Shown here in pieces: positions 1 to 64,000 of a stretch of 64,000 bases of DNA; position 1 is the first letter of the stretch, and each line of letters starts with the position of its first letter. Position numbers and translations under genes: made by a program. The notes under the pieces were generated by a model. It was not told where the DNA came from and did no database searches. It was given only the letters and a program-made list of their open reading frames with translations. The DNA lies in the sequence record OR545507.1; one strand, given 5' to 3'.

Positions 1-464
1 AAAATATTTGGATCAGTATTGTATAAGCCAATTGCGACGCGATTTGAACCGAAAAAACCAGGCTTGTATTGACGACTGGTGTTAATTGTACGGCTCATGT
101 CATCAACTGATAATGCGTTAGCCAAATATGAATAATATAATCCCTCAACACTACCGTTTGTACCACTACGTAATAATACGAGTGTACCATCGTTTTCTAA
201 TAAAATTTTATTTCTACGTTGGGACTGGTTTTCAGATGCACCATTGAAATCACCAGATACACCAGCAGGAAGATAGTTTTGTGACCCATAATGGGAAATT
301 GGCATCATACTGACGATATCTAGTACTTCATCTCTTGAATAAGTATCTAGCTCCATATTGCCATTAGCATCAAATACTTGATCATTGATACCTTGTATTG
401 TTCTTTTACCATTAACTGTCACATTATGTGTGACATCCAAGCCACCATATATTTTCTTTGACAT
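1..464 (-). CDS. partial (C-terminus runs off the window) hypothetical, probably late/virion protein
   Basis: Manual translation MSKKIYGGLDVTHNVTVNGKRTIQG..., open to the window edge; preceded by a TATAAATA box; not in the ORF track. Confidence 0.7.
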   Translation of the reverse strand, partial: MSKKIYGGLDVTHNVTVNGKRTIQGINDQVFDANGNMELDTYSRDEVLDIVSMMPISHYGSQNYLPAGVSGDFNGASENQSQRRNKILLENDGTLVLLRSGTNGSVEGLYYSYLANALSVDDMSRTINTSRQYKPGFFGSNRVAIGLYNTDPNI

Positions 465-498
465 TATATATCCCTTATAAATTAGATATTAGTTAATG

Positions 499-506
499 TA
501 TTTATA
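499..506 (-). promoter_or_regulatory. T4-type late promoter TATAAATA
   Basis: Exact TATAAATA on the minus strand ~35 nt upstream of the ATG at 464, just after a terminator. Confidence 0.6.
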
Positions 507-513
507 TACATAA

Positions 514-537
514 CAAAAAAGCACCCAATGGGTGCTT
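514..537 (-). terminator. rho-independent terminator after nrdG
   Basis: AAGCACCC-ATT-GGGTGCTT followed by a T-run on the minus strand. Confidence 0.8.
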
Positions 538-540
538 ATG

Positions 541-1011
541 TTAAAAATCTTTATTTTTATATAGTATTCTTTGATTATTTGAACCACGGAAAGGTAATTT
601 TAAATTCTTTTCGGACTCGATAAACTTACCATCAACTAATACATCTAAGTACTGAAGTATATCTTTAGCATGATTTTTCATAATCTCATCTAAAGTATAC
701 CCACTCCAGCACCAAATAGTTTTACTAGGATAAGTTTCTTTAACTACTTTGCATAGATTTAAAACTTCATCTATATTCTTTTTCATTAATGGATCGCCGC
801 CTAGAAGTGACAAACCACTAACATATGGTTTTTTTAGTTCCTGTAGTATAATCTCAACTGTTTCAGTACTGAACTCTTGTCCACTTCGGTAGTCCCATGC
901 TTCTTCATTGAAGCAACCATCACATCCGTGCGAACACCCACTAACAAATAAAGAGCAGCGAACGCCCTCTCCATTTACTAAATCATCCTTGATTATCGTC
1001 TGGTAATTCAT
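541..1011 (-). CDS. nrdG: anaerobic ribonucleotide reductase activating protein (radical SAM)
   Basis: GCSHGCDGCFN CxxxCxxC motif, LSLLGGDP, RGSNNQR; next to nrdD. Confidence 0.95.
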   Translation of the reverse strand: MNYQTIIKDDLVNGEGVRCSLFVSGCSHGCDGCFNEEAWDYRSGQEFSTETVEIILQELKKPYVSGLSLLGGDPLMKKNIDEVLNLCKVVKETYPSKTIWCWSGYTLDEIMKNHAKDILQYLDVLVDGKFIESEKNLKLPFRGSNNQRILYKNKDF

Positions 1012-1315
1012 CTAATATTGCACTCACTATTTCGACAAGAACATCGCCGTGACATGATTTTGGTTTACAGAAACAACCAAGGCGTTTCCCTGCGAGTTCA
1101 AGTAATTCATCAATCTTAACTTCTCCACAAGAAATACGTTCAATAATGTATTCTCTGAATTTTTCAATTGATTCTTCTCTTGTACTAACAATGAATTCGG
1201 CTTTAGTTTGTTTATCTTTAATATGGGTAAATGGGTTTCCCCATTTAGACCCACGTCCAATATACACATCATACGGTTCTTTGTATTTGTTAACCACAAT
1301 TGGCTTTAAATCCAT
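983..1315 (-). CDS. DUF4326-like protein
   Basis: VYIGRGSKWGNPF and LGCFCKPKSCHGDVL motifs. Confidence 0.8.
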   Translation of the reverse strand: MDLKPIVVNKYKEPYDVYIGRGSKWGNPFTHIKDKQTKAEFIVSTREESIEKFREYIIERISCGEVKIDELLELAGKRLGCFCKPKSCHGDVLVEIVSAILDELPDDNQG

Positions 1316-1323
1316 AATTTACC

Positions 1324-3192
1324 TTATTTGTGCTGAATACGCTCACAACACTCTTGTTGTTTGCCTTTATTGAATCCACGCGAAGAAGGATTACCCAAGT
1401 AACCAGAAACACGACGAATCACTGAGATTGTCTTCTCATTACGATTATCACATACCGGACAGTGGAAACCATGTTTATCTACACTGAACTCACCCTGGAA
1501 GCCACATTCATAACAATGGTCAACTGGTTGGTTAATACCAAAATATGGTATCTTAGTGTACGCATAGTTAACTAATGTTTCAAGTGCTTGAATGTTGTTT
1601 GCTAAGTTTGGAGATTCAACATAACTGATGTTTCCACCGTTACTTAGGTAAGCAAACCCTTCTTCATAACTCCATTTATCAAATGGAGAACTTTCTACCC
1701 ATACTGGTTGATGGAAGGAATTTGTGATGTAATCACGTTTTAGTACTGAAGGATATTTTGCTTCAATGCAACGTGCAAATTTATAACAAAGCGACTCTGC
1801 TGGAGTTCCATATAGACTAAAAGCAATATTACTTTCTTTTTTGAACTCATCACATTTTACTTTCATATAATTCAGTACTGACATACAAAACTCCTTACTG
1901 ATAGAACCAGTGAGGATTTCTGAACATTCAACAAGACCAACATAACCAATACTAATACTAGCATAACCATTGTAAAATAGCTTGTCAATGGTTTCTTCTG
2001 CACCTAAACGTGCTAATGCACCTTCCATGAACAAAATTGGATTCTGCTTCGCTTTAGTGCCTTTTAAACGCTCCACACGGTTCATCTGAGCACGATATGC
2101 AATATTCATGTGCTCGTCTATCTTATCAAAAAACTCTCCATCAGAAGCACTCTCAAGAGCAATTAGAGGTAAATTGATAGAAACTACGCCTAAATTGAAA
2201 CGACCGTTGTATTGTTCATTTCCATTTGAATCTTCCCATTTTCCTAAGAATGAACGACAGCCCATCGGTGTTACAGCAGTACTACTACTTCCAGTCACTT
2301 TGTGATTTAATGGAACTGAAACAAAGTCTGGGTAGATTCGTTTTGATGCACAACGCATAGCTAACTGTTTAAGGTCATAATTACTATCATTGGTATTCAT
2401 GTTTATACCATCTTGTAAAAAGAAAATTACTTTAGGAAACACTGGAGTAATCTTATCTTTACCTAAACCATTCTCATGAACTTTTAAGTACTGTTCAGTG
2501 ATTAATTTACCAAATTTAGAAGTATTAAGCCCTAAACTAAGAGAAATGAATGCAGCTTGTCCATTAGTGCTAATCATTGAATTAGTCTGGTAAAGTAATG
2601 TTTGACATCCATCGTATACTTCTTTTCGTAATTCTTCTTCAATGAACTCATCACTTAGATTATATTTCTTTTGTTTTTCTAACAGCTTATCCCATGACTT
2701 TTGGACGTAAGGTTCAAGACCAACGTCAATATGAGCCAACGATTGTCCACCGTACTGGGAACTGGCAACAGCTTGGACAATTTGTGTCAGTACTGTGCAA
2801 GCTACACTGAAACTTTTTGGTTCTTCAATTTTAGCACAACCAATAGTGAAGCCGTTTTTAAGCATATCAGGATAGTTAACCAAGCAACAATTGGTCAATG
2901 GGCTAATATAGTAATCTAAATCATGAATATGACCATATCCATCATTATGCCATTGCATTAACTCGGTGGGAATAACATCTTGTGAATAATGCTTAGATAG
3001 AATACCTGCTAGTAAATCTCTATGTGTATTGACGCATTTTGCATCTTTATTAGCGTTTTCATTAGTAAGATCAGTATTACTCTGATTTAGGAAATTTGTT
3101 ACATCGGTATATAATTTATCTAATTGCATTGTACATTCCTTGTATTTTGAAATCATCTGGGGGTGAAGATATTTAATATCACCAGACAACAT
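1324..3192 (-). CDS. nrdD: class III (anaerobic) ribonucleoside-triphosphate reductase
   Basis: TPMGCRS, YGTPAESL, CxxC...CxxC zinc site, C-terminal RRVSGYLG glycyl-radical motif. Confidence 0.97.
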   Translation of the reverse strand: MLSGDIKYLHPQMISKYKECTMQLDKLYTDVTNFLNQSNTDLTNENANKDAKCVNTHRDLLAGILSKHYSQDVIPTELMQWHNDGYGHIHDLDYYISPLTNCCLVNYPDMLKNGFTIGCAKIEEPKSFSVACTVLTQIVQAVASSQYGGQSLAHIDVGLEPYVQKSWDKLLEKQKKYNLSDEFIEEELRKEVYDGCQTLLYQTNSMISTNGQAAFISLSLGLNTSKFGKLITEQYLKVHENGLGKDKITPVFPKVIFFLQDGINMNTNDSNYDLKQLAMRCASKRIYPDFVSVPLNHKVTGSSSTAVTPMGCRSFLGKWEDSNGNEQYNGRFNLGVVSINLPLIALESASDGEFFDKIDEHMNIAYRAQMNRVERLKGTKAKQNPILFMEGALARLGAEETIDKLFYNGYASISIGYVGLVECSEILTGSISKEFCMSVLNYMKVKCDEFKKESNIAFSLYGTPAESLCYKFARCIEAKYPSVLKRDYITNSFHQPVWVESSPFDKWSYEEGFAYLSNGGNISYVESPNLANNIQALETLVNYAYTKIPYFGINQPVDHCYECGFQGEFSVDKHGFHCPVCDNRNEKTISVIRRVSGYLGNPSSRGFNKGKQQECCERIQHK

Positions 3193-5777: not shown

Positions 5778-5823
5778 AGTAATCTCCAATTAAAAAGTAC
5801 TGCACACGATGGCAGTACTGATG

Positions 5824-15426: not shown

Positions 15427-15455
15427 ATAATATAGTACTTAAACACTTAAGTCAA
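15427..15455 (-). promoter_or_regulatory. sigma70-like promoter
   Basis: TTGACT-17-TATTAT, with AGTACT in the spacer. Confidence 0.55.
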
Positions 15456-48558: not shown

Positions 48559-48576
48559 AAAATTCTCCTTTAGGAC

Positions 48577-48605
48577 AATGTATCATACAAAAATACCAGA
48601 GTCAA
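48577..48605 (-). promoter_or_regulatory. sigma70-like promoter
   Basis: TTGACT-17-TACATT with TG. Confidence 0.45.
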
Positions 48606-48619
48606 CCCCTGGTACGAAT

Positions 48620-51843: not shown

Positions 51844-51858
51844 CTCTAGTTAAAATCA

Positions 51859-51887
51859 AGTATAACACACCTGAATGCTCTTGTAAA
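51859..51887 (-). promoter_or_regulatory. sigma70-like promoter
   Basis: TTTACA-17-TATACT with TG. Confidence 0.6.
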
Positions 51888-51896
51888 GCCATAAAC

Positions 51897-51920
51897 ACAA
51901 AAAGACCCATACGGGTCTTT
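51897..51920 (-). terminator. rho-independent terminator
   Basis: AAAGACCC-n4-GGGTCTTT plus T-run. Confidence 0.75.
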
Positions 51921-54019: not shown

Positions 54020-54420
54020 ACTTTACCAGGGAAGTGTTTCTCGTAGTACTCATCATCACTTAACATATAATCAGGAGTTTCTACTTCTATGGTTTTGAAG
54101 ATTGTTTCTGGAATGTGTGTGACTTTATTGGGTTGTACTTTATGTTCGCGTAAAACCTTCTGTATCGCTCCTAGACGTTGTAAATCGATACATGTAGGAA
54201 AGACTAAGCTGTACTGAAATAACTCATCAGGGGTCATTATAGACACATCTTTAGCTTGTTTGATTTGATAATTAGTACTAATGAATATATCAAATCCTTG
54301 TACAGCATTATAGCTTACATAGGTTGTTTTATTTTTGTCAATAGGAGCACTTAAACGATATCCATATATCCCGTGTTGGTCAACAACACAACGTTGCATA
54401 ATTTTAATCATTTCTAACAT
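54007..54420 (-). CDS. family A paralogue
   Basis: PDELFQYSLVF. Confidence 0.7.
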   Translation of the reverse strand: MLEMIKIMQRCVVDQHGIYGYRLSAPIDKNKTTYVSYNAVQGFDIFISTNYQIKQAKDVSIMTPDELFQYSLVFPTCIDLQRLGAIQKVLREHKVQPNKVTHIPETIFKTIEVETPDYMLSDDEYYEKHFPGKVWRD

Positions 54421-54766
54421 AATTTACCTCATATGTATTGTAACACCACGGTTTAACAATATCGATTTGTATATCATTTGCTTCATGAAAATGTTTAAGT
54501 ACCTTCTGGTATTCCATTATTTCGTACACATCTTCAGTACTGATAGTGCTCTGCTGAAACAATTCCTCTTCTGATAAAGTACTATAATCAGGGATTTTTA
54601 TTTCTGAATATATATCATTTATCTTTCCATTATATTGATAAATCTGGATATAAAATTGATTGTATTCTGGAATATAGGTCACATAATGGTTGTGGTTGAT
54701 TACATATCTTGAAACAAAGTATTCAGTACCATCAGTCATGTACTGAATTGTTGTCGTATTTTTCAT
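54404..54766 (-). CDS. family A paralogue
   Basis: PDYSTLSEEELFQQSTI. Confidence 0.7.
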   Translation of the reverse strand: MKNTTTIQYMTDGTEYFVSRYVINHNHYVTYIPEYNQFYIQIYQYNGKINDIYSEIKIPDYSTLSEEELFQQSTISTEDVYEIMEYQKVLKHFHEANDIQIDIVKPWCYNTYEVNYVRND

Positions 54767-55226
54767 TCAAATAATCCACGCATTTATAGTATACTACTAA
54801 ATCTAAAAAGAATCGTTGTTTGTATTTGTAATGATGAAGTAGTGCACCATAAAATAACATAGCATTAAGTACTTTTACATCATGAATACAAGAACCCTGA
54901 AAGTACATTTCCTCTGACATGAACACTAAATCATCATACTTAACAAATACTGCTTCTCTATAATTGTCAATATTAATCTTCAAATCAGACCCAGGGCAAT
55001 ATGAAATGTATCCGGCTTTGTAATGAAAGTCATTGTCATCAAAGTACTCGGCATAGATTTGATTACCTCTTTCATTAGTAAACGCAAGTCTTCCTTTGGA
55101 TGAACTAAACTCATCGTATTCGAACATACCACCAAATGGGTCAGGACTTCTGAACTCCTTTGCAATGCGATAGATATTTTCTGCAAATTCTAAAACACCA
55201 TCGTAATCATATTCTGTAGTAATCAT
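54732..55226 (-). CDS. family A paralogue
   Basis: SEEMYFQGSCIH. Confidence 0.7.
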   Translation of the reverse strand: MITTEYDYDGVLEFAENIYRIAKEFRSPDPFGGMFEYDEFSSSKGRLAFTNERGNQIYAEYFDDNDFHYKAGYISYCPGSDLKINIDNYREAVFVKYDDLVFMSEEMYFQGSCIHDVKVLNAMLFYGALLHHYKYKQRFFLDLVVYYKCVDYLNEKYDNNSVHD

Positions 55227-55699
55227 AAACCATTTTTCTCCAGGTACTCAATAATACAATCGAGATTGTTCAGGTCCAAGTAGAAATGATCACTATCTGA
55301 ATTTAGTTCATTTTTAAGGGCAGTGTAAATCACTGAACTGAAAACAATCCTCTCTGGATACACAGTACTGTACTGGAAGAACTCTTCTTCAGTGTTAATT
55401 TCAGCCGTATCAAATCCTTCATTTATAAGATGATGATTGTAGTATTTGAAATTATCTGAACTTGGGAAATGGTATGAAATAAAATCACCACTTGGTACTT
55501 CATCAAGCACTCTAATACTACAAGTTGATTCATCTGAACTATAGAGTAACCCATCCATAAAGGAAAGGTATCCATTTCGTTTTTTGACTGTATGTTTGCC
55601 TACGGAAAAATCTTCAGTAACATTTGTAAGGAATTTATAAACCCTGATAATGTCTTTTGCTATTTTTTGTGCATTGCTAAATGATAGGTCTTTGGACAT
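55223..55699 (-). CDS. family A paralogue
   Basis: TEEEFFQYSTVY. Confidence 0.7.
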   Translation of the reverse strand: MSKDLSFSNAQKIAKDIIRVYKFLTNVTEDFSVGKHTVKKRNGYLSFMDGLLYSSDESTCSIRVLDEVPSGDFISYHFPSSDNFKYYNHHLINEGFDTAEINTEEEFFQYSTVYPERIVFSSVIYTALKNELNSDSDHFYLDLNNLDCIIEYLEKNGL

Positions 55700-55732
55700 T
55701 GTGATATAACCCTTTACAATTAATATAAAGAG

Positions 55733-55762
55733 ATTATATCACAAAGAATCGGAGGGTGTCAA
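55733..55762 (-). promoter_or_regulatory. sigma70-like promoter (extended -10)
   Basis: TTGACA-18-TATAAT with TG. Confidence 0.65.
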
Positions 55763-56343
55763 GATGGGTTGCGAAGTTCTACCATTTCTTTCCAAACTAA
55801 TTGGTAATCTTCTAAGTCCAGATAGAAGTCTTCATTCCAGTGCTCATGAAAGTACTTATACATGAATAGAACTCCTAAATCGTATGCAGGAAACAATAAT
55901 GATAGTTGAAAGTAGTATTCCTGATTTAAAACTATATCAATAAACTCTAATGTACGTATGCCACCTTTCGATGAACGTATCTCAATGTGTGAGGTATCCT
56001 TCATACTGTAACACATGAAACCACCTCTAAATTCTGGATCATATTCACATTCGAACTGCTCACTGTTGTTATAGAAATCTCTCCCACTTTCTTGATCTTT
56101 CGGTCTACGTACTGATACATGAATATTTTTATCACGGTACATTGAACGATTTAGTATTTTCAAACATTTGAACTTATCTTCTTTAATGAACTTGATAATA
56201 TCAATTATATCTTGTGCTGTACTGATAGCTGATTCGAATGTATCCAACTTAAGATGATTATATTGGGTTCCAGAGTTCATTTTTTTATCTAACATATAAA
56301 CCTCATAATTCATACATTTTTGATTTGAACTGCATATGACCAC
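55759..56343 (-). CDS. family A paralogue
   Basis: QEYYFQLSLLF; true start probably downstream of 56343. Confidence 0.7.
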   Translation of the reverse strand: MVICSSNQKCMNYEVYMLDKKMNSGTQYNHLKLDTFESAISTAQDIIDIIKFIKEDKFKCLKILNRSMYRDKNIHVSVRRPKDQESGRDFYNNSEQFECEYDPEFRGGFMCYSMKDTSHIEIRSSKGGIRTLEFIDIVLNQEYYFQLSLLFPAYDLGVLFMYKYFHEHWNEDFYLDLEDYQLVWKEMVELRNPS

Positions 56344-56644
56344 CTATTTCACATGGATAACAATTCATAATTTTGTTCAATAGAATCTGGTATTTTTTAA
56401 TAACTTCTATATCAATTTTTATATTACTATTAAAAACTAATGATTCTTGAAATAATTCCCCCTCGTCAAGTGAAGTAAAATCATTTATCTTCAAGGGTAT
56501 ATTGTTGCATCGCAAGGAGAATGTATTTTCATCACGAATTAAAGTATAGAAATCATTATGTTTTTTATTATAATCAAATTTAACAAGTAGTAGTTTAATA
56601 TGAGTAGCGTACATTACTTTAACTAATTCAGATTCACGTCGCAT
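56303..56644 (-). CDS. family A paralogue
   Basis: DFTSLDEGELFQESLVF. Confidence 0.7.
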   Translation of the reverse strand: MRRESELVKVMYATHIKLLLVKFDYNKKHNDFYTLIRDENTFSLRCNNIPLKINDFTSLDEGELFQESLVFNSNIKIDIEVIKKYQILLNKIMNCYPCEIGGHMQFKSKMYEL

Positions 56645-57066
56645 ACAATACCTCTCTTATGATGCAAACATTCTTGCATAATGTGTTGTATTTTTCGTAA
56701 CAGAAACACATCCAGTTCATTAAAAACAGTACTGTACTGGAACATCTCTTCTTCCCCGTACTCAGTTAAATCATCAATTTCATCTCTAGAAACAGCTACA
56801 ATATTAAAACCACGTGTACTACAATAACCCTTAGTAAGATAATATATGTACTTGTACTCTCCGTTGATATCTAAGAGATCTTGTGTGATACAGAAGCTTT
56901 TGGGTGACAGTTTATCATCAGGAACCATATGCCTTGCTTGTACATAGCAACGGATACCATCACCTATACTATATGTAATAACTTCAAATTCAATCTTCAT
57001 AGGTGAATATAATCCTTTTATATTGCTCAGGTGCAGTACTGAAACGTTTGATTGGATAATTATCAA
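56623..57066 (-). CDS. family A paralogue
   Basis: GEEEMFQYSTVF. Confidence 0.7.
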   Translation of the reverse strand: MIIIQSNVSVLHLSNIKGLYSPMKIEFEVITYSIGDGIRCYVQARHMVPDDKLSPKSFCITQDLLDINGEYKYIYYLTKGYCSTRGFNIVAVSRDEIDDLTEYGEEEMFQYSTVFNELDVFLLRKIQHIMQECLHHKRGIVCDVNLN

Positions 57067-57352
57067 AGATTCTTTTCATTTCTTTCTGGATTAAACATAA
57101 GAAATCAAAGTTACAATCGTACTTATTATCCCATACTAAACTTTCTTGGAATAACTCATCCTCTTGCATTAGTGTAGTGTCAATTACATCTTCACGGACA
57201 TAGCTATATACTTCATAGCTCTTGAAGCCATCTTCTGATAATTCTAATTCATATGCAGCCATATCAAACATATCATCATGGTTTGTCTTCAAAGATATTA
57301 AACAAGTAACTAATTTTTTAGTTGTATAGTATGTAATACTTAATGTGTTCAT
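56990..57352 (-). CDS. family A paralogue
   Basis: DTTLMQEDELFQESLVW. Confidence 0.7.
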   Translation of the reverse strand: MNTLSITYYTTKKLVTCLISLKTNHDDMFDMAAYELELSEDGFKSYEVYSYVREDVIDTTLMQEDELFQESLVWDNKYDCNFDFLCLIQKEMKRIFDNYPIKRFSTAPEQYKRIIFTYED

Positions 57353-57357
57353 TTGTT

Positions 57358-57960
57358 TTATACCTCAGTATATAGCTTACAATAGCTTTCATCGAAATTA
57401 CAAACACTTCTCAAGTACTGACACAGGTCATTGAAAATATTTACATTTGATATATATACATTATCAAATTCTGTTCGTTGAAAGAATGTATACATAGAAT
57501 TTGTAATATATCGCATTGCATCTTCACGTCCCATAGTTATATCATTTGTGAACATTGCATCTTCATCAGTACTGATGTGTTCTATTTTAAATGATTTCAT
57601 AAATGGAATACTCTTTCCTAGGGCATAACCATCACCATATGATGCTTCTACTGCACCTTTAGAATAAAGGAATTGATATAAGTCCGAATCACGATTATAA
57701 AAAGTACGACATACGGAGGAACATAATTTATTATCTATATGAAATAAAAATCTTTTAGCATTTTTGTCTAATACTATTCGCAATGCATCACTCTCTAGAA
57801 ATATATCACCATCAAGCATAAATGAGAACTGTACTAATGCTTTTTCTAAATCCGCTCGTTTGTGATAAATCATTTCCTGCATATATATAATATCATTTGC
57901 TAATTTCTTAAAAAACAAATGCACATCTGCACTACAACATTTATTTGCATTTATTGACAT
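57358..57960 (-). CDS. family A paralogue (degenerate)
   Basis: TDEDAMFTNDI. Confidence 0.6.
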   Translation of the reverse strand: MSINANKCCSADVHLFFKKLANDIIYMQEMIYHKRADLEKALVQFSFMLDGDIFLESDALRIVLDKNAKRFLFHIDNKLCSSVCRTFYNRDSDLYQFLYSKGAVEASYGDGYALGKSIPFMKSFKIEHISTDEDAMFTNDITMGREDAMRYITNSMYTFFQRTEFDNVYISNVNIFNDLCQYLRSVCNFDESYCKLYTEV

Positions 57961-58511
57961 AATAGTTCCTTATACATATGATGTACTTTACAAATCTCAT
58001 TATAGTATTTCATATCAATGTCATTTGTATTAAAAACGGAAACAGACAATACTGCTAACTTATCAATTAAGTAATTATTATCGGCGTACTGTTTTAACTT
58101 ATTGAACATATAGATGCATTTTATACTTAATTCATCATGCAACACACTGTTCTGAAAAATATTCTCTTCAGTATTAGGAGATAAGTAATCTTCAATTATA
58201 TACGATAAACTACTATCGCAATCTTTATAGATTGAAATTGATGGATGTAATGTGTCATACATTACACTAAACAGATCACCGTCATATGTGGATATTAAAC
58301 TATTATTGGAAACAGTAGGATGATAATATTTCAGTACTGAAAACTTTGAACAATCAGTGCAGTAAAAATGATCCATCCCTCGACGACTTTCGTATGAGAA
58401 TAGTTTACTTGTATATTCAATCCCTTTGGTGCGACGGATTGTTTCATGCATTTCTGCACATTGCATTAAAATTACCATACGTTCAAACGCAAGATCTAAA
58501 TCATCGTACAT
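57951..58511 (-). CDS. family A paralogue
   Basis: TEENIFQNSVLH. Confidence 0.7.
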   Translation of the reverse strand: MYDDLDLAFERMVILMQCAEMHETIRRTKGIEYTSKLFSYESRRGMDHFYCTDCSKFSVLKYYHPTVSNNSLISTYDGDLFSVMYDTLHPSISIYKDCDSSLSYIIEDYLSPNTEENIFQNSVLHDELSIKCIYMFNKLKQYADNNYLIDKLAVLSVSVFNTNDIDMKYYNEICKVHHMYKELLCQ

Positions 58512-58692
58512 AACGGATATCCTTCTTCAACGAATTAATATATTCCAAAATAACTTGTTCCTGATATTGGGTTCCCAAGTACATCAGTACTTTCAACTCT
58601 TTGAATTCAGTACTATATGAGTCTGTTTGCATCATTCTAGTAGAATATATATTGAATAGTTTAGCAATATCATCTTGGTCTATTATTTTCAT
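58501..58692 (-). CDS. small hypothetical protein
   Basis: ORF track; weakly similar to 58670..58888. Confidence 0.55.
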   Translation of the reverse strand: MKIIDQDDIAKLFNIYSTRMMQTDSYSTEFKELKVLMYLGTQYQEQVILEYINSLKKDIRYVR

Positions 58693-58888
58693 TAACCCTC
58701 TTCTGTATTAGTTCCTGTAAGTGCTGAATATAACCCTTCATTGCAACATCCTGTTTGTTAGAGCCAACGAAGAACAAGAGCTTAAAGTCATGGTAATCCA
58801 TTTTTGGTTTAGTAGTGAACCATATGTCCCACACTGCACTCACAGTTCTCATGTATTCAATTCGATTAAATGTTTTTGAATACTTCAT
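58670..58888 (-). CDS. small hypothetical protein
   Basis: ORF track. Confidence 0.55.
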   Translation of the reverse strand: MKYSKTFNRIEYMRTVSAVWDIWFTTKPKMDYHDFKLLFFVGSNKQDVAMKGYIQHLQELIQKRVNENNRPR

Positions 58889-59402
58889 CGATGTTCATTG
58901 CCAATAAGTTAATATACAAATTACTGTTAAATGCTATCTGCAATTCCATATAGAACTGAATGATTGCATAGTCAGGGTCAGTACACGATAGTTGAAAACA
59001 CTGTTCGTCGAATGCATTGTAATTGTACTTAGGGATGTGAATTTCACGCTTCAAATCAGGTTGCCCCCACTTCATCGCGTACACACCAATGTTATTGTTC
59101 TTTTTCCTTTTCTTAAATGTTAATTGTTGAATATTTCCTGCGTTATCCAGGAAAATAGAATTATTCGACACAGGTGCACCAATAGAAAACAATGATGTAT
59201 CAATTACGTGTTTCTCACGTACATCACACTTCTGAAATGCACCTGTACCCTGTAATACACGATGAAAATTGTACTTCTCATTAACAACAGTACTAGGATC
59301 AATTAAACCAGTACTGCATTTTTTGAGTACTGGTACGATGATACGAATCTTTTTTGATAAATCTTGTAATGCATCAAAGTCATTGATGTTAACTTTCATC
59401 AC
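58866..59402 (-). CDS. family A paralogue
   Basis: DEQCFQLSCT. Confidence 0.7.
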   Translation of the reverse strand: MMKVNINDFDALQDLSKKIRIIVPVLKKCSTGLIDPSTVVNEKYNFHRVLQGTGAFQKCDVREKHVIDTSLFSIGAPVSNNSIFLDNAGNIQQLTFKKRKKNNNIGVYAMKWGQPDLKREIHIPKYNYNAFDEQCFQLSCTDPDYAIIQFYMELQIAFNSNLYINLLAMNIDEVFKNI

Positions 59403-59848
59403 TCAAATGTGGCCTCTTCAGTAGTAACAAAATTGATTAGTGTATCCAGTTCAGCAGTGTCAAGATAAAATACATCCAGTACTGATTTCTGATATATTAC
59501 ACTGAATGTGCATAGATTGTCAAGCGTTCCTTGTTCATAAACAGTACTACCCTGGAAGTACCCTTCTTCAGTACTCAGGGATAAAATGTCTGAAATTTTA
59601 AAAGATTCTTCAGTCGCATGTCTTTCTATATTAACTAAATGTCCGTTTCGGTTCAATGAAATATAATCGTATGCTAACTCAATTAGACTATAATTATCCG
59701 CATTAGTGTCAAATAAAGCGACAATTTTTCGTCTCAATCTCTCATCGTGATCATGGTTTTCATCAGCTAAGTATTCAGGATTTTCTTTGAAGAACTGAAC
59801 AACTTTTAGAATATCATTTGCTTTCTTGATTGCACTTTCGTAACTCAT
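59399..59848 (-). CDS. family A paralogue
   Basis: TEEGYFQGSTVY. Confidence 0.7.
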   Translation of the reverse strand: MSYESAIKKANDILKVVQFFKENPEYLADENHDHDERLRRKIVALFDTNADNYSLIELAYDYISLNRNGHLVNIERHATEESFKISDILSLSTEEGYFQGSTVYEQGTLDNLCTFSVIYQKSVLDVFYLDTAELDTLINFVTTEEATFE

Positions 59849-60153
59849 AATAATTCAACCACTCCATCTCTAAAGTACATATAACTACCACCATTGGATA
59901 CCTTGAATTCTATTGTCCCCAATAATATATTATATTTTTTTATTTCACATGTAGTACTGGTAGTGTAAGGCTCACCATCTCCTAAGTACATTGACATATG
60001 ACATAGAACTTTTCTACCTGCATATTTCTCTTCAAACGATTGTTCAAAACTATGCATAATTTGATTTAAAGCTGAAATGTAATTAATAAAGTCAGGTATT
60101 TCTGTCAATGAATTATAAACCGTACAAAGTGAATCAAATTCATTTTTAGTCAT
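59845..60153 (-). CDS. family B paralogue inside the family A array
   Basis: FEEKYAGRKVLC. Confidence 0.6.
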   Translation of the reverse strand: MTKNEFDSLCTVYNSLTEIPDFINYISALNQIMHSFEQSFEEKYAGRKVLCHMSMYLGDGEPYTTSTTCEIKKYNILLGTIEFKVSNGGSYMYFRDGVVELL

Positions 60154-60467
60154 TATATTTCTATCTCAATGTAATCCTGTGTGATTAAGTAATCCCAATG
60201 ATACTTCACCTGCTTTTGTAATTCAATTAACGTAAAGAAGTTGATCGATTTATCCCATACGAGCGATTCCTGGAAAATAAATGATTCATGTTCATCGTAA
60301 TAATCACACTCTAAAAAATCAGGTATATATTCACTATCGTGAATGTATTCAACAAACGAACTAGCTTGGCATTTCTTTACTACTAGTAATAATGAATTAT
60401 CATGATCAAACAGATACAATAAACTAATTTCACCAGGGACGTACTGAACACTGAATAAGTTTTTCAT
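60153..60467 (-). CDS. family A paralogue
   Basis: ESFIFQESLVWD. Confidence 0.7.
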   Translation of the reverse strand: MKNLFSVQYVPGEISLLYLFDHDNSLLLVVKKCQASSFVEYIHDSEYIPDFLECDYYDEHESFIFQESLVWDKSINFFTLIELQKQVKYHWDYLITQDYIEIEI

Positions 60468-60916
60468 TCTATACCTTCTGGATCTTTACGAAGTTCTTCG
60501 AAATCCAAATAAAATCGAGGACAGTTAACACTCTTTAAGTACCACATAATAACTAATGCTTCAAGTACTTCATCATCGTAAACAGTACTGTTTTGGAAGT
60601 AATACTCTTCACTATCCCACGGACCATCCAGTACTTCATAATTCAAAATTAATGGTTTTTTGCGATTAATAAAACGAATGCTACCATTTTCAACATAACT
60701 AATAAATTCTGCATCTCTATTGTATTCAGAAAACGATATAGGACTATTGGAATTCAACCCAAGAATAACCCTTACACCCACGGAGTTATTATACATTTCA
60801 TCTTTGTAGTAGTTGCCGTTCTCGGCTTTGTACACTTCTTTGAACTTTCCTGCCTTTATATCGTCAAAGTATCCATGTAGTTCTTTTGCTTTTTCAAGAG
60901 CACTTTGTAATGACAT
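60464..60916 (-). CDS. family A paralogue (GPW subgroup)
   Basis: VLDGPWDSEEYYFQNSTVY. Confidence 0.75.
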   Translation of the reverse strand: MSLQSALEKAKELHGYFDDIKAGKFKEVYKAENGNYYKDEMYNNSVGVRVILGLNSNSPISFSEYNRDAEFISYVENGSIRFINRKKPLILNYEVLDGPWDSEEYYFQNSTVYDDEVLEALVIMWYLKSVNCPRFYLDFEELRKDPEGIE

Positions 60917-61382
60917 TACCTTCTCCTACAGTATTCTCTACATATTCATAATCAAAATAGAAACTACTGGAGTCAATACTTTTGAAATACCACATAATTA
61001 CAATAACATCTAATTCTTCTTCATTGTACAACGTACTATTCTGGAAGTAATATTCTTCACTATCCCACGGTCCTTCCAGTACTGAATAAGGAATGATAGT
61101 GTCATCAGCATCACTATCTGTGTTGTAGATGGTAATATCTTCATTACGGCAATAACTAATGTACTGATTGTACATATGATATTCACAGTTATCACTGTCA
61201 CCAGTATCAGTGTGCAGTACTAATGTTTCTGCACATATCTCGGACTCGTCATAATCGTCACGGTCTTTTACAAAAAATTCAGTATCAGATGTTTTATATA
61301 CACCTGGTACTGAACCTTCCTGTACCATAATCATGTACTCATGAATCTTCTTTGCTTCTTTCAATGCACTTTGTAATGACAT
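60894..61382 (-). CDS. family A paralogue (GPW subgroup)
   Basis: VLEGPWDSEEYYFQNSTLY. Confidence 0.75.
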   Translation of the reverse strand: MSLQSALKEAKKIHEYMIMVQEGSVPGVYKTSDTEFFVKDRDDYDESEICAETLVLHTDTGDSDNCEYHMYNQYISYCRNEDITIYNTDSDADDTIIPYSVLEGPWDSEEYYFQNSTLYNEEELDVIVIMWYFKSIDSSSFYFDYEYVENTVGEGNVITKCS

Positions 61383-61825
61383 TACAAATCCCCTGTACTT
61401 AAATATTCACATGCTCCCCAGTCAAGAAAGAATGGTTCAAAATTCAATTCCTTAAAGTACCACAACACAACCAAGGAATCAAGAATTTCTTGGTTAAAAA
61501 TGAGACTCTGTTGGAAGTAATACTCTTCAGTACCCCACGGGCCATCAAGTACCCCGAAGTCAACAGGTGTATTTGTTGTGTCAAAAGTAATCTTAGTACC
61601 TGGAATATATACAAAAAAATTAGTATATTGACTACATGAAGAGTACTGTATAGTATTGTCTTTATCCTGTCCCATAAGTAAAATATCATCAGAGTATGTC
61701 TTTATACCTGATAGATAATACTCATCACCAAATGCACTTACTTTATCACCATAGAACCCACTTTTTATGTTATCGTGGAAGTGATGTATTCTGTGTGCTA
61801 GTTCAAGTGCACTTGCTAAACTCAT
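61382..61825 (-). CDS. family A paralogue (GPW subgroup)
   Basis: VLDGPWGTEEYYFQQSLIF. Confidence 0.75.
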   Translation of the reverse strand: MSLASALELAHRIHHFHDNIKSGFYGDKVSAFGDEYYLSGIKTYSDDILLMGQDKDNTIQYSSCSQYTNFFVYIPGTKITFDTTNTPVDFGVLDGPWGTEEYYFQQSLIFNQEILDSLVVLWYFKELNFEPFFLDWGACEYLSTGDL

Positions 61826-62292
61826 ATATCCTCTTTAATAACTCGTAGTAGATCCAAGTCCAAATAGAAGCTAGGACAATCTGTATTATTAAAGTACCAC
61901 AGAATGACAAGCTTGTCAAGTACATCTTCCTCGTAGATAGTATTCTGCTGGAAGTAGTACTCTTCACTTCCCCAGTCATTATCCAGTACTGAATACGGAA
62001 GATGTTTCTCTGCTGCACCAGATATAATGTCAGAATCTTGTATTAAAATATCAGCATCACGACAGAAGTACATGTAATTATCTTCCAAATTAACATCACA
62101 CCCATTGAGTGTTGTTTCAGAAGAATCTAAGTTTTCTTCATACATGTGAATGTACTCACTACTGTCATCGTATCTCATTCGACAATATGATTTACCTTCC
62201 TTGAATAGATATCCATTAAGACAATTTGCTACAATTTCTTTGCTGCATAAATCAATTAACTTCGCAATCTCTAATGCTCTTTCTAAACTCAT
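61822..62292 (-). CDS. family A paralogue (GPW subgroup)
   Basis: VLDNDWGSEEYYFQQNTIY. Confidence 0.75.
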   Translation of the reverse strand: MSLERALEIAKLIDLCSKEIVANCLNGYLFKEGKSYCRMRYDDSSEYIHMYEENLDSSETTLNGCDVNLEDNYMYFCRDADILIQDSDIISGAAEKHLPYSVLDNDWGSEEYYFQQNTIYEEDVLDKLVILWYFNNTDCPSFYLDLDLLRVIKEDI

Positions 62293-62293
62293 T

Positions 62294-62785
62294 TCAACCC
62301 CTGTTAATACCGTTATCTACAGTTTTCTTTACGTATTTGTAATCGAAATAGAAGTTCCCAGAACCAATACTTTTAAAGTACCACATAATTATAATAACAT
62401 CAAGTACTTCATTATCATATACAGTACTTTGTTGGAAGTAATACTCTTCACTATCCCACGGACCTTCCAGTACTTCACTCGGAATTATAATGTCATTGGA
62501 ATCGCTGTCAGTACTGTTGATGGTATCTGTATCATTAATATAGACCATGTACTCATTATGCATATTAATGAAGCATTCATAATCATTAGGGTCGGTATCT
62601 AGTATGCACGTTTCTGTATCCAGTACGCACGTTTCTGTATCTGAGCAGTCATTATAAAGGAGGTTATCCGGTACATAATATTGAGTACTTGTGTCTTTGA
62701 AAACACCGTAAACTGAACCTTCTTTTGCCATATTCATGTACTCATGAATCTTCTTTGCTTTTTCCAATGAACTCTGTAATGTCAT
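62294..62785 (-). CDS. family A paralogue (GPW subgroup)
   Basis: VLEGPWDSEEYYFQQSTVY. Confidence 0.75.
   Translation of the reverse strand: MTLQSSLEKAKKIHEYMNMAKEGSVYGVFKDTSTQYYVPDNLLYNDCSDTETCVLDTETCILDTDPNDYECFINMHNEYMVYINDTDTINSTDSDSNDIIIPSEVLEGPWDSEEYYFQQSTVYDNEVLDVIIIMWYFKSIGSGNFYFDYKYVKKTVDNGINRG
62595..62642. repeat. 21-bp tandem duplication (ETCVLDT/ETCILDT)
   Basis: gtatctagtatgcacgtttct / gtatccagtacgcacgtttct / gtatct. Confidence 0.85.
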
Positions 62786-62794
62786 TTTATAATC

Positions 62795-63154
62795 TCATAT
62801 ATTGAAATAATAATTATTCGTTCTTGATGGGGATGGATTAAATACGTTTTCTTTTTCAAATCTCTTCATTTCATTTTGCAAAGAAACCATTTCTTCAAAT
62901 GTACAGGAGTACTTATTCTTATCAAACACTAATGCAGCCTGAAATAGTTCCCCATCGTCCAGTACTGTATAATCTATAAGACTCTCAGATTCATAGTCAT
63001 AGTCGTCATGTGATACATGAATAAATTTAAAACAAGAATCTTTGTAATGCATATATAAACTCAACTCATGTTCCGAGTCGCCCTTAATAAGATTACAGCA
63101 CAAGTCCCATCCTTTAGGTAACTTATAATAGTACATAGAATAATCATATGTCAT
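62795..63154 (-). CDS. family A paralogue
   Basis: DYTVLDDGELFQAALVFD. Confidence 0.7.
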   Translation of the reverse strand: MTYDYSMYYYKLPKGWDLCCNLIKGDSEHELSLYMHYKDSCFKFIHVSHDDYDYESESLIDYTVLDDGELFQAALVFDKNKYSCTFEEMVSLQNEMKRFEKENVFNPSPSRTNNYYFNI

Positions 63155-63507
63155 TCTTGAATTCCTAAATTGAATTTGTATTCTTGATTAATACTTGCAT
63201 TGGGTTTATGCAAAGCAGCATACTCTTTCATTTCATTTTGTATTGCAATAACTTCTTCAAATGTACACAAGTACTTCTTATCAAATACTAATGATTCTTG
63301 GAATAGTTCTGCGGTATCCATTAATGTATAGTCCGGCATATCTTGGTGTGGATACTGTAATGAACTGTAATCAATGAATGTAAATTTACCCTGAGTGTAA
63401 TGAATATACTCATTTGCACTGTGCATTAAATCACCTTTGTTTAAATTACAAAAGTACTGATAACTGTGCTTGAAAGTATGTACTGATATTAAAAAATCAA
63501 ATTCCAT
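63151..63507 (-). CDS. family A paralogue
   Basis: DYTLMDTAELFQESLVFD. Confidence 0.7.
   Translation of the reverse strand: MEFDFLISVHTFKHSYQYFCNLNKGDLMHSANEYIHYTQGKFTFIDYSSLQYPHQDMPDYTLMDTAELFQESLVFDKKYLCTFEEVIAIQNEMKEYAALHKPNASINQEYKFNLGIQE
63428..63471. repeat. 44-bp direct repeat, copy 1
   Basis: aaatcacctttgtttaaattacaaaagtactgataactgtgctt, identical to 63957-64000. Confidence 0.9.
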
Positions 63508-63878
63508 CAGTACTCAACCTCTACATAAATAGATTCAGGAAACTTAGTCATATAATCTTCTGGATAGTTCTGCATTACTTTGATCATTTCTGCCTGTGTA
63601 GCACGGACGTATTCAATTGGTGCTCCTGGTAAATTCCAGACAGTACTTTCCTGAAAGAATTCCTCTTCTGACAGTACTGTCAGATTTACAAAATCATTAC
63701 GGTAATTTTTTGAATCATCATATGTGAAGATTTTAAAAGACCCATTTTCATATAGTACAAGAACAAAATGGGAGAATTTTTGTAATGCACCACCAAGGCT
63801 TTCCACGACCGCATGATTCAGTGTACAGATGACCTCTTTTTTCCTCATACCGAATTGAATTCTAATTTCTTTTTTCAT
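63507..63878 (-). CDS. family A paralogue
   Basis: TVLSEEEFFQESTVW. Confidence 0.7.
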   Translation of the reverse strand: MKKEIRIQFGMRKKEVICTLNHAVVESLGGALQKFSHFVLVLYENGSFKIFTYDDSKNYRNDFVNLTVLSEEEFFQESTVWNLPGAPIEYVRATQAEMIKVMQNYPEDYMTKFPESIYVEVEY

Positions 63879-64000
63879 AAAATCTCCTTCAGATTAGTAC
63901 TGAATTTGTACAGAATATTAGAACTGTATACAGCCTCTGTATCTGTATCCATAATCAAATCACCTTTGTTTAAATTACAAAAGTACTGATAACTGTGCTT
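63875..64000 (-). CDS. 3' end of a gene that duplicates the 5' part of 63151..63507
   Basis: ...KHSYQYFCNLNKGDLIMDTDTEAVYSSNILYKFSTNLKEIL*, ATGA overlap with the start at 63878. Confidence 0.55.
   Translation of the reverse strand, partial: KHSYQYFCNLNKGDLIMDTDTEAVYSSNILYKFSTNLKEIL
63957..64000. repeat. 44-bp direct repeat, copy 2 (may extend beyond the window)
   Basis: Identical to 63428-63471. Confidence 0.9.

Follow-up and report, generated by a model that had tools for sequence, protein, structure and literature searches.

The palindromic hexamer AGTACT is hyper-abundant in RaK2-like jumbo phages. Its excess is a signal at the DNA level that codon, dipeptide and dinucleotide usage do not explain, and it is a trait of the phage clade, not of its hosts. 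Our tentative explanation is that selection maintains the word for a sequence reader encoded by the clade, the likeliest being a symmetric protein that recognises double-stranded DNA (dsDNA) and tags phage DNA as self, although we rate the chance that this reading is correct as somewhat short of even. The DNA analysed was a 64-kb stretch (hereafter the window) forming part of the ~350-kb genome of Escherichia phage vB_EcoM_G17, an Asteriusvirus and RaK2-like jumbo phage. No description of AGTACT hyper-abundance in these phages was found in the searchable literature.

An over-represented palindrome shared across a phage clade

322..63987, no strand assigned: AGTACT field, 204 copies (54 as CAGTACTG), from counts and shuffles

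A preliminary description of this DNA had estimated ~200 copies of AGTACT and ~54 of CAGTACTG, against zero-order expectations of ~20 and <1. The exact counts are 204 and 54, with 27, 24, 31, 41, 28 and 31 copies of AGTACT in successive 10-kb bins and 22 in the final 4 kb, identical to the earlier bin numbers, and the expectations computed at the window GC content of 0.33 are 21.5 (observed/expected, O/E, 9.5) and ~0.6. AGTACT ranks first among all 4096 hexamers in the window, where the runner-up 6-bp palindromes reach an O/E of just 2.0–2.35. The whole genome carries 918 copies in 350 kb, against 362 ± 12, or approximately one per 300 bases.

Over the 918 genome sites, information is limited to the hexamer and to weak flanks, with C at position −1 and G at +6. 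All NGTACN variants are enriched ~2-fold, and half-sites alone (AGTAC not followed by T, or GTACT not preceded by A) show no greater enrichment than GTAC in other contexts. Non-palindromic AGTAC occurs 400 times on the plus strand and 460 times on the minus strand, which is near expectation except in one block.

Lytic phages were said at the outset to normally avoid 6-bp palindromes, and G17 fits this rule, so its wealth of AGTACT is unusual. GCGC and approximately 25 six-base palindromes are wholly missing from the phage, whereas GCGC occurs every ~150 bp in a 50-kb sample of the host, and CGATCG is found just 2 times in 350 kb.

The comparison with related jumbo phages that had been suggested earlier places AGTACT at 2.8–3.3/kb in RaK2, GAP32, Salmonella 7t3, an Erwinia BF-like phage and Xanthomonas XbC2, but at only 0.04–0.18/kb, with the excess absent, in PA5oct and in one T4-like and one rV5-like coliphage. 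The density in a 50-kb sample of E. coli is 0.06/kb (one per ~17 kb), some 50-fold below that of the phage. The signal is specific to a phage lineage rather than to the host.

A signal at the DNA level

1324..3129, minus strand: NrdD gene, 5 AGTACT sites (annotation and count)
10202..11641, minus strand: PhoH-like gene, 5 AGTACT sites (annotation and count)
21044..22462, minus strand: DNA ligase gene, 6 AGTACT sites (annotation and count)

Conserved enzymes such as these three had been cited as carriers of the motif, which was also described as occurring in all three frames and in intergenic DNA, and the window agrees on each point. It holds 85 sites as AGT-ACT, 65 as xxA-GTA-CTx, 43 as xAG-TAC-Txx and 11 between genes (including those at 15434 and 5796..5819). 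Thus, 193 of the 204 sites are intragenic, and yet the density is nearly the same in coding (3.19/kb) and intergenic (3.10/kb) DNA.

Three kinds of shuffle (200 of each) were applied to the window, and the excess persisted at z scores of 15–32. Compared with the 204 copies observed, 59.7 ± 5.7 remained when synonymous codons were shuffled within each gene (z 25), 99.7 ± 7.0 when all dinucleotides were preserved as well (z 15) and 35.7 ± 5.3 when codon order was shuffled within each gene (z 32). For CAGTACTG, the corresponding values were 6.4, 9.4 and 3.0 against 54 observed. The control palindromes ATGCAT, CATATG, TCATGA and TGTACA gave z ≤ 3.6 in the same three shuffles. Hence, neither disappearance of the excess in codon- and dipeptide-preserving shuffles nor equal enrichment of other palindromes, the two outcomes that the preliminary description had regarded as contrary to its claim, was encountered.

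Codon choice is biased in favour of the motif, as had been suspected, and about half of the synonymous opportunities for AGTACT are occupied. The motif spells 85 of 137 S-T dipeptides (21.7 expected), 65 of 129 xVL tripeptides (11.7 expected) and 42 of 93 occurrences of [KEQ]Y[FLSYCW] (7.8 expected). Protein content is skewed as well, with 137 S-T dipeptides against 78 expected and 160 V-L dipeptides against 101 expected. The phage encodes tRNA-Ser(ACT) and tRNA-Thr(TGT), which fits a long-term adaptation to the overuse of AGT and ACT.

The proposal that AGTACT merely follows from codon or amino-acid usage, from repeated elements or from the purging of other palindromes can draw on the favoured status of AGT, ACT, GTA and TAC (37–43% of their codon families), on the location of part of the sites inside repeated promoter and terminator modules and on the presence of paralogous gene families, but it is scarcely credible and is refuted by the shuffles, given z scores of 15–45 against every protein-, codon- and dinucleotide-preserving null, matching intergenic and coding densities, flanks almost free of information (only 56 of 918 sites share the commonest decamer) and other palindromes that are not enriched.

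Turnover and spacing

AGTACT sites are under purifying selection with balanced turnover. Between G17 and TH47, 74% of the sites are retained, compared with 44% for hexamers overall, and 46 gains are matched by 46 losses. The DNA ligase gene served as an anchor in the cross-genus orthologue comparisons; between genera, 23–32% of G17 sites are shared, against a background of 8–11%, and density is constant.

The sites are also evenly spaced. Their mean separation in the window is 314 bp and every 1-kb bin is occupied. The coefficient of variation (CV) of the spacing is 0.80 over all 204 sites. When only the 189 coding-opportunity sites are considered it is 0.83, whereas random occupancy of the opportunities gives 1.00 ± 0.06 (p ~0.001), although this evenness could partly reflect the evolution of the opportunities themselves.

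A candidate double-stranded DNA reader

We propose that selection on the DNA itself would keep AGTACT, with C preferred before it and G after it, both dense and even, and that a sequence-specific protein from the RaK2-like core genome would read it. The likeliest reader would be a symmetric (dimeric) protein on dsDNA. At approximately one copy per 300 bp of phage DNA, against one per ~17 kb in the E. coli sample, the word could act as a positive ‘self’ tag that lets a phage factor selectively load on, organise or protect phage DNA. We infer all three elements of this model, namely the protein nature of the reader, its dimeric binding to dsDNA and the outcome of binding. Perfect palindromy and symmetric flanks would be expected of a site read by a dimer on dsDNA, and the enrichment of the flanks and of NGTACN resembles the graded recognition that a binding-site weight matrix describes. 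The density of AGTACT and the absence of GCGC together suggest sequence-based discrimination between self and host by a phage that lacks both modified bases and a phage nucleus. Pfam searches returned no domain, and no candidate reader, among 10 clade-conserved uncharacterised window proteins and 8 uncharacterised ORFs beside the Dam-family gene described below.

Some sites occupy positions where a bound reader might affect transcription:

15434..15439, no strand assigned: intergenic AGTACT within a sigma70-like promoter region (TTGACT ... AGTACTATATTAT) in a divergent gap (sequence)
5796..5819, minus strand: two AGTACT copies, each supplying one arm of the hairpin of an intrinsic terminator, AGTACTGC...GCAGTACT, with a T run after it on the gene strand (sequence)

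An ARNOLD terminator is annotated in MK327931 at window positions 5797–5818. The arrangement TTGACA-N9-cAGTACTg-TATAAT recurs in the terminal-repeat early region, where the density of AGTACT peaks at 6–7/kb, and in early promoters the word keeps a fixed register, lying 7 nt ahead of TATAAT 19 times and 15 nt past TTGACA 13 times. Because such sites sit between the −35 and −10 boxes, a bound reader could shut early promoters off. However, a purely regulatory role cannot account for the bulk of the sites, because only ~40 of 918 are promoter-linked with a fixed register. We likewise rejected a promoter or operator element as the identity of the word, given its predominantly intragenic location.

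Single-strand readings

48001..64000, plus strand: zone of rising one-off variant TGTACT that leads into an AGT-free block (9, 6, 9 and 7 per 4 kb, against 1–6 elsewhere)

A 7.6-kb block, which begins 366 bp after the last base of the window, is devoid of the trinucleotide AGT on one strand. Within it, ACT is absolutely banned on one strand, the remaining NCT words are reduced 2–3-fold, and the opposite strand keeps GTACT at 5.5/kb. The strand-specific ACT ban extends over 7.0–8.2 kb in G17, ECO103, TH47 and A4. The syntenic position in RaK2 holds no ACT-free block, even though RaK2 has the AGTACT excess.

Since the AGT half-site is banned on one strand only, the block hints that the relevant reader may act on single strands, of DNA or RNA, which is not predicted by a dimeric dsDNA binder. 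AGTACT and the ACT-free block may be two faces of one single-strand system that reads ACT or ACU, a possibility that we consider unlikely. Such a system may be a primase with AGTACT as its full site, in which case one strand would never be primed over an 8-kb zone, or it may be an ACU-specific phage endoribonuclease, with some 20 immune ACU-less early genes serving as a timing switch. If true, the specificity of a single enzyme would have led a giant phage to rewrite ~900 genome and proteome positions and to acquire a dedicated tRNA-Ser(ACU).

In its specific form, the primase proposal holds that a T4-type (gp61-like) enzyme starts on template 5′-ACT-3′, that AGTACT is the optimal site on both strands, with a cryptic 3′ T and five templating bases that yield the pentamer primer pppGUACU, and that the 7.6-kb block is closed to priming on the gene strand. 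T4 gp61 starts at trinucleotides (GTT/GCT) and makes pentamers, and T7 gp4 recognises GTC but needs 5-nt sites for useful primers. RaK2 and phAPEC6 encode gp41/gp61 homologues, the motif information spans exactly 6 nt, the even spacing suits Okazaki priming, the absolute ban on ACT with milder NCT depletion is a hierarchy typical of primase specificity, and the opposite strand keeps GTACT. Nevertheless, palindromy and symmetric flanks have no explanation under a single-strand reader, because only 1.6% of hexamers are palindromic, and a 6-nt requirement would be a costly oddity, because trinucleotide sites are abundant by chance. The unremarkable half-sites and the lack of an ACT-free block at the syntenic place in RaK2 also count against this proposal, which we judge to be unlikely, if only slightly more so than the broader single-strand possibility.

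Methylation, molecular drive and host factors

39236..39757, minus strand: small phage Dam-family N6-adenine DNA methyltransferase (predicted), G17_00508 (Pfam PF05869, E 7e-32)

A dsDNA-binding reader is not the only kind of protein that might favour AGTACT. A phage methyltransferase, for instance a Dam-family enzyme retargeted to GTAC or AGTACT, may mark the word, with dense methylation selected for protection, strand discrimination or recruitment. Self-marking methylation came first among the systems named in the preliminary description, but this reading is rather unlikely. The PF05869 enzyme, present in one or two copies in relatives, is the only DNA-modifying candidate found in the window, and GTAC is the most enriched 4-bp palindrome (2.2-fold). 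AGTACT is a well-known type II recognition sequence (ScaI/Eco255I), and there are adenine methylases that act on GTAC. However, characterised PF05869-family members methylate GATC, and we know of no solitary methylase target enriched 9-fold and of no function that would require 900 methylated sites. The methylases described in papers on relatives are limited to N6-adenine and C5-cytosine (HaeIII-like, CpG-type) enzymes, and these papers report no ScaI-like gene. According to the paper on RaK2, its DNA resists methylation-sensitive enzymes, which favours methylation, but the reported cytosine methylation is at CpG, a dinucleotide that AGTACT does not contain.

The excess was originally ascribed to ‘selection or mutational drive at the DNA level’. 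The DNA level is upheld by the shuffles, whereas purely mutational drive is disfavoured. Molecular drive without function, wherein biased mismatch repair or gene conversion turns near-cognates into AGTACT during recombination-dependent replication (by very-short-patch repair, as proposed for HIP1, or in the manner of uptake-sequence drive), seems quite improbable to us. It accords with balanced turnover, with the accumulation of sites where sequence varies freely (synonymous positions, promoter spacers and terminator stems) and with the precedents of HIP1 and the uptake signal USS as iterated words that reshape proteins. However, one-off neighbours are not drained but mostly enriched, up to ~2-fold (0.95–2.1 times expectation; AGTATT 0.95, AATACT 1.19). 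The differences between G17 and TH47 fall over all six motif positions (28, 32, 34, 17, 29 and 24) with no transition or single-position signature, occupied sites are more even than random occupancy, and the same set-point of ~3/kb is seen in five genera. A word driven by very-short-patch repair was rejected on the absence of both neighbour depletion and position-specific substitution bias.

It is very improbable that the phage exploits the binding site of a conserved host factor such as the nucleoid-occlusion protein SlmA, whose site we take to be GTGAGTACTCAC, with AGTACT at its centre. The cores are identical and most hosts are Enterobacterales, but the presumed consensus needs G at −1 and C at +6, which are the rarest bases at those phage positions (56 of 918 sites, or 6%, against a 15.5% background, and 92 of 918, or 10%, against 18.6%), and an SlmA-type site was rejected on this basis. 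Moreover, the trait persists in Xanthomonas-infecting members, and other phages that share these hosts lack it.

Comparison with known iterated words

Few hyper-iterated words like HIP1, USS and Chi exist, and much has been learned from them about how DNA machines shape genomes; to our knowledge, HIP1 is unexplained after 30 years. The HIP1-like comparison made in the preliminary description is a fair one for the phenomenon. Like HIP1 (GCGATCGC, cyanobacteria), AGTACT is a short perfect palindrome found once per ~300–1000 bp, is lineage-specific and of unsettled function, and skews codon choice and peptide content. It provides the top hexamer and the top octamer, with 918 copies in the 350-kb genome and 204 in the window, and its excess is seen in every frame and outside genes and persists against codon-preserving nulls. 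Unlike HIP1, it is AT-rich, spans 6 bp with weak flanks and belongs to a lytic phage clade rather than a cellular genome, and a neighbour-depletion or repair signature was sought in AGTACT phages and not found. HIP1 proper is excluded by sequence and lineage, since the word is not GCGATCGC and RaK2-like jumbo phages are not cyanobacteria.

Other systems share fewer features. The uptake words USS (Pasteurellaceae) and DUS (Neisseria) occur about once per kb, in all coding frames, are maintained despite turnover and often pair in terminator stems, as AGTACT does at 5796–5819, but they are asymmetric 9–12-mers for the uptake machinery of competent bacteria, a step that the phage lacks. An uptake-sequence-like word was rejected for a 6-nt palindrome with two weak flank positions in a lytic phage. 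Chi, KOPS and GATC (SeqA/MutH) are over-represented words met regularly by a DNA-processing machine and imply coverage-type selection. However, Chi and KOPS lack symmetry and are strand-polarised, GATC is dense but not strongly enriched, and we know of no such word reported for a phage genome at 9-fold excess. A polar word of the Chi/KOPS type was rejected because a palindrome has no orientation and AGTAC is near expectation on both strands outside one block. The stoperators of cluster A mycobacteriophages and the TF1 sites of SPO1 are also numerous in their own genomes, promoters included, and there a phage-encoded DNA-binding protein controls transcription, but they comprise ~30 asymmetric 13-bp sites per genome, mostly intergenic, against ~900 palindromic and mostly intragenic copies of AGTACT. 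The primase sites of T4 gp61 and T7 gp4 are short words at regular spacing, with a trinucleotide core that matches the one-strand ACT ban and a 6-nt length equal to a cryptic base plus a pentamer, but known examples are non-palindromic and are not known as enriched or protein-reshaping.

A HIP1-like phenomenon is now found in a lytic coliphage that can be cultured on E. coli K-12 (Sharanji has been propagated on MG1655), and dozens of sequenced relatives span 60–100% identity; the question is therefore directly testable. The word is identical to the ScaI/Eco255I target. Phages normally avoid restriction targets, and G17 does so for most other palindromes, but it uses this one more often than any other hexamer, and the clade has no known ScaI-type gene. 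Unless the sites carry a modification, digestion with ScaI or RsaI would cut these genomes to pieces. Synthetic recoding or engineering of these phages, which are candidates for therapy, should take AGTACT into account; the word also offers a simple diagnostic of the clade in metagenomes.

A hyper-iterated palindrome in an Asteriusvirus genome

Exact counting recovered 204 copies of AGTACT and 54 copies of its extended 8-nt form, CAGTACTG, in the window (33% GC), where a zero-order model predicts 21.5 and approximately 0.6, respectively. The palindrome is the commonest hexamer in the window, next in rank being GTACTG and CAGTAC, which overlap it, while the other 6-bp palindromes have observed/expected ratios (O/E) of at most 2.35. 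The excess had been noticed in a preliminary description made from the sequence alone, whose counts per 10 kb were reproduced exactly by our recount, and it is borne out by the exact counts and by the shuffles described below.

The window is 100% identical to positions 270,450-334,449 of Escherichia phage vB_EcoM_G17 (MK327931.1), an Asteriusvirus and jumbo myovirus of the 121Q/PBECO4/RaK2-like type. The 370.8-kb G17 record includes a direct terminal repeat of ~20.5 kb, as the genes from G17_00614 onward (350.3 kb) repeat those from G17_00001 onward; a length of 20,668 bp is given in the published description of phage Sharanji. Nearly all window genes are carried by the minus strand, and these include nrdD/nrdG, phoH, a Sir2/NUDIX/WGR cluster, and genes for dCMP deaminase, ClpP, DNA ligase, PseT, RnlA and a Dam-family methyltransferase, together with ~100 small ORFs that have no assigned function.

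The excess arises at the DNA level

Copies of the word occupy all three reading frames (AGT-ACT, 85; xxA-GTA-CTx, 65; xAG-TAC-Txx, 43) as well as intergenic DNA (11 of the 204), and their density is 3.10 per kb in intergenic and 3.19 per kb in coding sequence. Only 35.7±5.3 copies are expected in the window when codon order is shuffled per gene, 59.7±5.7 when synonymous codons are shuffled per gene, and 99.7±7.0 when third bases are swapped such that protein, codon usage and all dinucleotides are kept, whereas four control palindromes gave z values of 3.6 or less. A genome-wide synonymous shuffle of OR844650.1, a near-identical unannotated genome of 350 kb, yielded 362±12 copies against 918 observed. 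Taken per 25-kb bin, the observed/shuffled ratio stays between 2.6 and 3.8, structural genes included, and drops to 1.8-2.0 only in bins rich in intergenic sites, because these sites were left unshuffled.

About half of the window peptides that can carry the word with no amino-acid change do so. S-T is written as AGT-ACT in 85 of 137 cases (codon usage predicts 21.7), x-V-L carries the word in 65 of 129 (11.7 predicted), and [KEQ]-Y-[FLSYCW] in 42 of 93 (7.8 predicted). The proteins themselves are skewed, with 137 S-T against 78 expected (T-S, 71) and 160 V-L against 101 expected (L-V, 97). The four shuffle schemes applied to the window and the genome-wide scheme thus rule out a codon, dipeptide or dinucleotide artefact, and we consider it scarcely credible that the excess is a by-product of coding. 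Given the shuffles, the frame spread and the peptide occupancy, neither of the outcomes named in the preliminary description as refuting a DNA-level signal (loss of the excess in shuffles, or equal enrichment of other palindromes) was observed.

Anatomy of the word

AGTACT is the top hexamer of OR844650.1 and CAGTACTG (204 copies) its top octamer; the top decamers are TTCAGTACTG, TCAGTACTGA and CAGTACTGAA. Information is limited to the hexamer plus C(-1) and G(+6), at 0.33 bit each, and therefore the word is not a dispersed repeat. With flanks beyond ±1 near background (<0.05 bit) and the commonest decamer accounting for only 56 of the 918 sites, a repeated element or MITE is ruled out. All NGTACN variants lacking CpG are enriched approximately 2-fold, as is GTAC overall (2.2-fold), but the full palindrome alone reaches 7.7-fold, a gradation such as a binding-energy matrix would give. 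No significant helical or 3-bp periodicity was found among site pairs.

Density rises to 6-7 per kb in the early region with the terminal repeat, where many copies are fixed inside repeated promoters.

Early promoter modules
L003:1-25000 (left end of G17; early region with the terminal repeat): sigma70-type promoter modules, almost identical and numbering in the dozens, and terminators, located before very small ORFs

These modules have the form TTGACA-N9-cAGTACTg-TATAAT, and one variant carries TTGACAGTACT. Further copies lie in terminator stems (for example, window 5796-5819). The fixed register is real in ~40 early promoters, yet a promoter motif does not explain the word, since promoter and terminator modules together hold only ~40 of the 918 sites and leave ~880 that are intragenic.

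A trait of the RaK2-like clade

Relatives from five other genera or species were sampled as 22-25 kb around the DNA ligase gene.

AGTACT copies in relatives and control genomes
RaK2 (Klebsiella): 75
GAP32 (Cronobacter): 69
7t3 (Salmonella): 70
pEa_SNUABM_19 (Erwinia, Eneladusvirus): 74
XbC2 (Xanthomonas, Mimasvirus): 63
PA5oct (Pseudomonas, distant relative): 1 in 25 kb
T4-like Mosigvirus: 9 in 50 kb
Vequintavirus: 5 in 50 kb
E. coli K-12: 3 in 50 kb (0.06 per kb)

The first five carry 2.8-3.3 copies per kb (O/E 8-10), and AGTACT ranks first or second among hexamers in each. Because all five are rich in the word and the control genomes are poor, the excess is a trait of the RaK2-like clade and not of the host. 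Host-driven composition is ruled out: the word is scarce in E. coli and in coliphages of the T4-like and rV5-like types, but is retained by members that infect Xanthomonas. The trait is also old, since orthologous genes across these genera share only 57-63% nucleotide identity. A cluster of phage tRNA genes fits a long-standing load of AGT and ACT codons.

tRNA cluster
L004:31069-34895 (in OR844650.1): seven phage tRNAs, including tRNA-Ser(ACT) and tRNA-Thr(TGT)

The unusual ACT anticodon of this tRNA-Ser is a Watson-Crick reader of AGU, and the two tRNAs match both codons of the frame-0 word. Ser and Thr tRNAs are also reported in the RaK2 paper.

Sites turn over at constant density

When 20 orthologous genes were aligned by codon, 23-32% of the sites in G17 had a positional match in another genus, against a hexamer background of 8-11%; across genera, most sites have been replaced while density is unchanged. 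G17 and TH47, which are 84.2% identical over 56 kb, share 132 of 178 sites (74%, compared with 44% for hexamers overall), and among the 90 abundant hexamers none is better conserved than AGTACT and the words that overlap it. Private sites are balanced (46 in each phage), and differences are distributed over positions 1-6 as 28, 32, 34, 17, 29 and 24.

A conversion drive without function might maintain such a word, but we judge this improbable. No transition or single-position bias was found in the G17-TH47 site differences, and no depletion of neighbour words in OR844650.1. A signature of Vsr/HIP1-type repair was thus not found, and the undepleted neighbour words argue against a drive of the Vsr type. 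In addition, spacing in the window is more even for the 189 occupied sites among 353 synonymous opportunities than for random draws of 189 (CV 0.83 versus 1.00±0.06, p ~0.001; variance/mean per kb 0.76 versus 1.05, p 0.03). Even spacing is predicted by a function that requires coverage, and not by blind drive.

Two gaps to the right of the window

Genome-wide, the longest stretches without AGTACT are two gaps of 8.3 and 5.0 kb directly right of the window (the 99th percentile under uniform placement is 4.0 kb). AGTACT is absent from the first because the trinucleotide AGT is banned on the + strand.

AGT-free stretches, + strand
G17 334,815-342,464 (L018:366-8015, G17 sequence right of the window): 7,649 bp, beginning 366 bp beyond the window
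OR844650.1 285,451-293,664: 8,213 bp
TH47 72,111-80,217 (L019 and L020): 6,976 + 1,130 bp
Phage A4, L024:4816-11797: 6,981 bp, in a more divergent phage

AGT occurs on average every 51 bp genome-wide. The gap is 160 times the mean spacing; no other trinucleotide has a gap of more than 25 times its own. On the gene strand of this block, and in the mRNAs of its ~20 small genes, ACT/ACU is absent in every frame (Thr codons: ACT 0, ACA 73, ACC 17, ACG 14), and other NCT words are depleted 2-3-fold. The palindrome is replaced by TGTACT, with 45 + strand copies in all three frames (5.5 per kb; AGTACA on the gene strand) and none of its reverse complement. Between G17 and TH47 these copies turn over (12 versus 10) with ~45 kept in each, which indicates that pressure towards the word is still active in the block but is overridden by the ban.

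The block is conserved across Asteriusvirus, and BLAST matches for its genes are confined to that genus. A clade-wide ACT-free block is rejected, as RaK2 lacks one at the syntenic position. Domain searches with 10 block proteins gave no informative matches.

The second gap is of a different make-up.

Second AGTACT-free stretch
L018:~11000-15200 (G17 ~345.4-349.6 kb): ~4-5 kb, tandem array of 21 paralogous ORFs

These ORFs (~70-85 aa, 119 paralogous pairs) bear AGTACA on the + strand instead of AGTACT, and the gap may be explained by inheritance through duplication.

A long run of ORFs of ~150-200 aa without known function extends over window 44000-63900 and L018:1215-6785. Weak matches of several first-block members to a single PHROG (phrog_12674) point to a large family of diverged paralogues. 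Copies of AGTACT in window genes are concentrated in the two deciles between 60% and 80% of gene length, which hold 38 and 31 copies (versus ~14 per decile), and this may reflect the same family.

What might read the word

The preliminary description had proposed a phage-specific system acting at the DNA level. This part of its interpretation is upheld by the shuffles and the clade distribution. We tentatively favour a reading in which AGTACT would be a dense self tag on phage DNA, recognized by a putative clade-encoded symmetric dsDNA-binding protein. The grounds for this reading are that the palindrome and its flanks are symmetric, that the weight matrix is graded, that coverage is even, that the contrast to the host is ~50-fold, and that copies in early promoters are placed as operators would be. 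No Pfam domains were detected in ten clade-conserved window proteins of unknown function.

Readers of single strands are serious alternatives, because the banned triplet is the exact half-site of AGTACT (~3% chance for an unrelated triplet). Two possible readings of the block are a primase-free strand and an ACU-less cassette of genes immune to an ACU-specific RNase, and either agent could lie behind both word and block. That AGTACT is a gp61-type primase site is nonetheless unlikely in our estimation. The papers on RaK2, CBB, Sharanji and phAPEC6 describe a T4-like replisome with gp41/gp61 homologues; they also describe a capsid inner body, terminal repeats of 20-22 kb and early promoters that are sigma70-like.

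A methylation mark seems rather unlikely. The same papers report restriction-resistant DNA, and their methylases are N6-adenine and C5-cytosine enzymes (HaeIII-like, CpG). The window methyltransferase is a PF05869 enzyme (small phage Dam family), and a second, suggested by the Sharanji annotation, had no Pfam match in eight neighbouring ORFs. AGTACT is also the target of ScaI. A host-factor site is very doubtful. AGTACT forms the centre of the SlmA site, but the flanks in the phage are opposite to those of that site.

The closest phenomena are cyanobacterial HIP1 and uptake sequences, although the AGTACT field lacks the sequence, the lineage and the machinery by which these are defined. The four phage papers do not mention AGTACT, and literature searches on AGTACT or CAGTACTG in phages and on Asteriusvirus methylation yielded no description of the word. 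AGTACT is a hyper-iterated genomic word, here in a lytic phage clade, of which we found no prior description, and it has two striking companions: the strand-specific triplet-free block and a total loss of GCGC.

Missing palindromes and other window genes

GCGC is absent from the window and from 350 kb of genome (293 expected), as it is from every RaK2-like sample; besides the window, the sequences covered were L004-L010, L011-L015, L019-L021 and L024. E. coli carries 6.8 per kb, and levels are normal in PA5oct and in other coliphages. The loss might stem from extreme avoidance of restriction, or from immunity to a nuclease of the phage itself that is directed at GCGC. Of the 64 6-bp palindromes, 27 are missing from the window altogether. 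About 25 6-bp palindromes have 0-2 copies, including GGTACC, CGTACG, GGATCC, CTGCAG and GTCGAC.

Among 4-bp palindromes genome-wide (L004-L010, the pieces of OR844650.1), TGCA is the second most enriched (1.63-fold), and GATC, CTAG and TCGA stand at ~0.5-fold despite the phage Dam-family methylase. ATGCAT is enriched 2.2-fold in the window.

The window also holds a probable counter-defence gene set.

Probable counter-defence genes
Window 6969-7940, 12331-13631 and 28774-31945: WGR-domain protein, NUDIX and Sir2-like deacylase (NAD-related), PseT polynucleotide kinase and RnlA RNA ligase

In T4, the PseT and RnlA pair repairs damage by anticodon nuclease.
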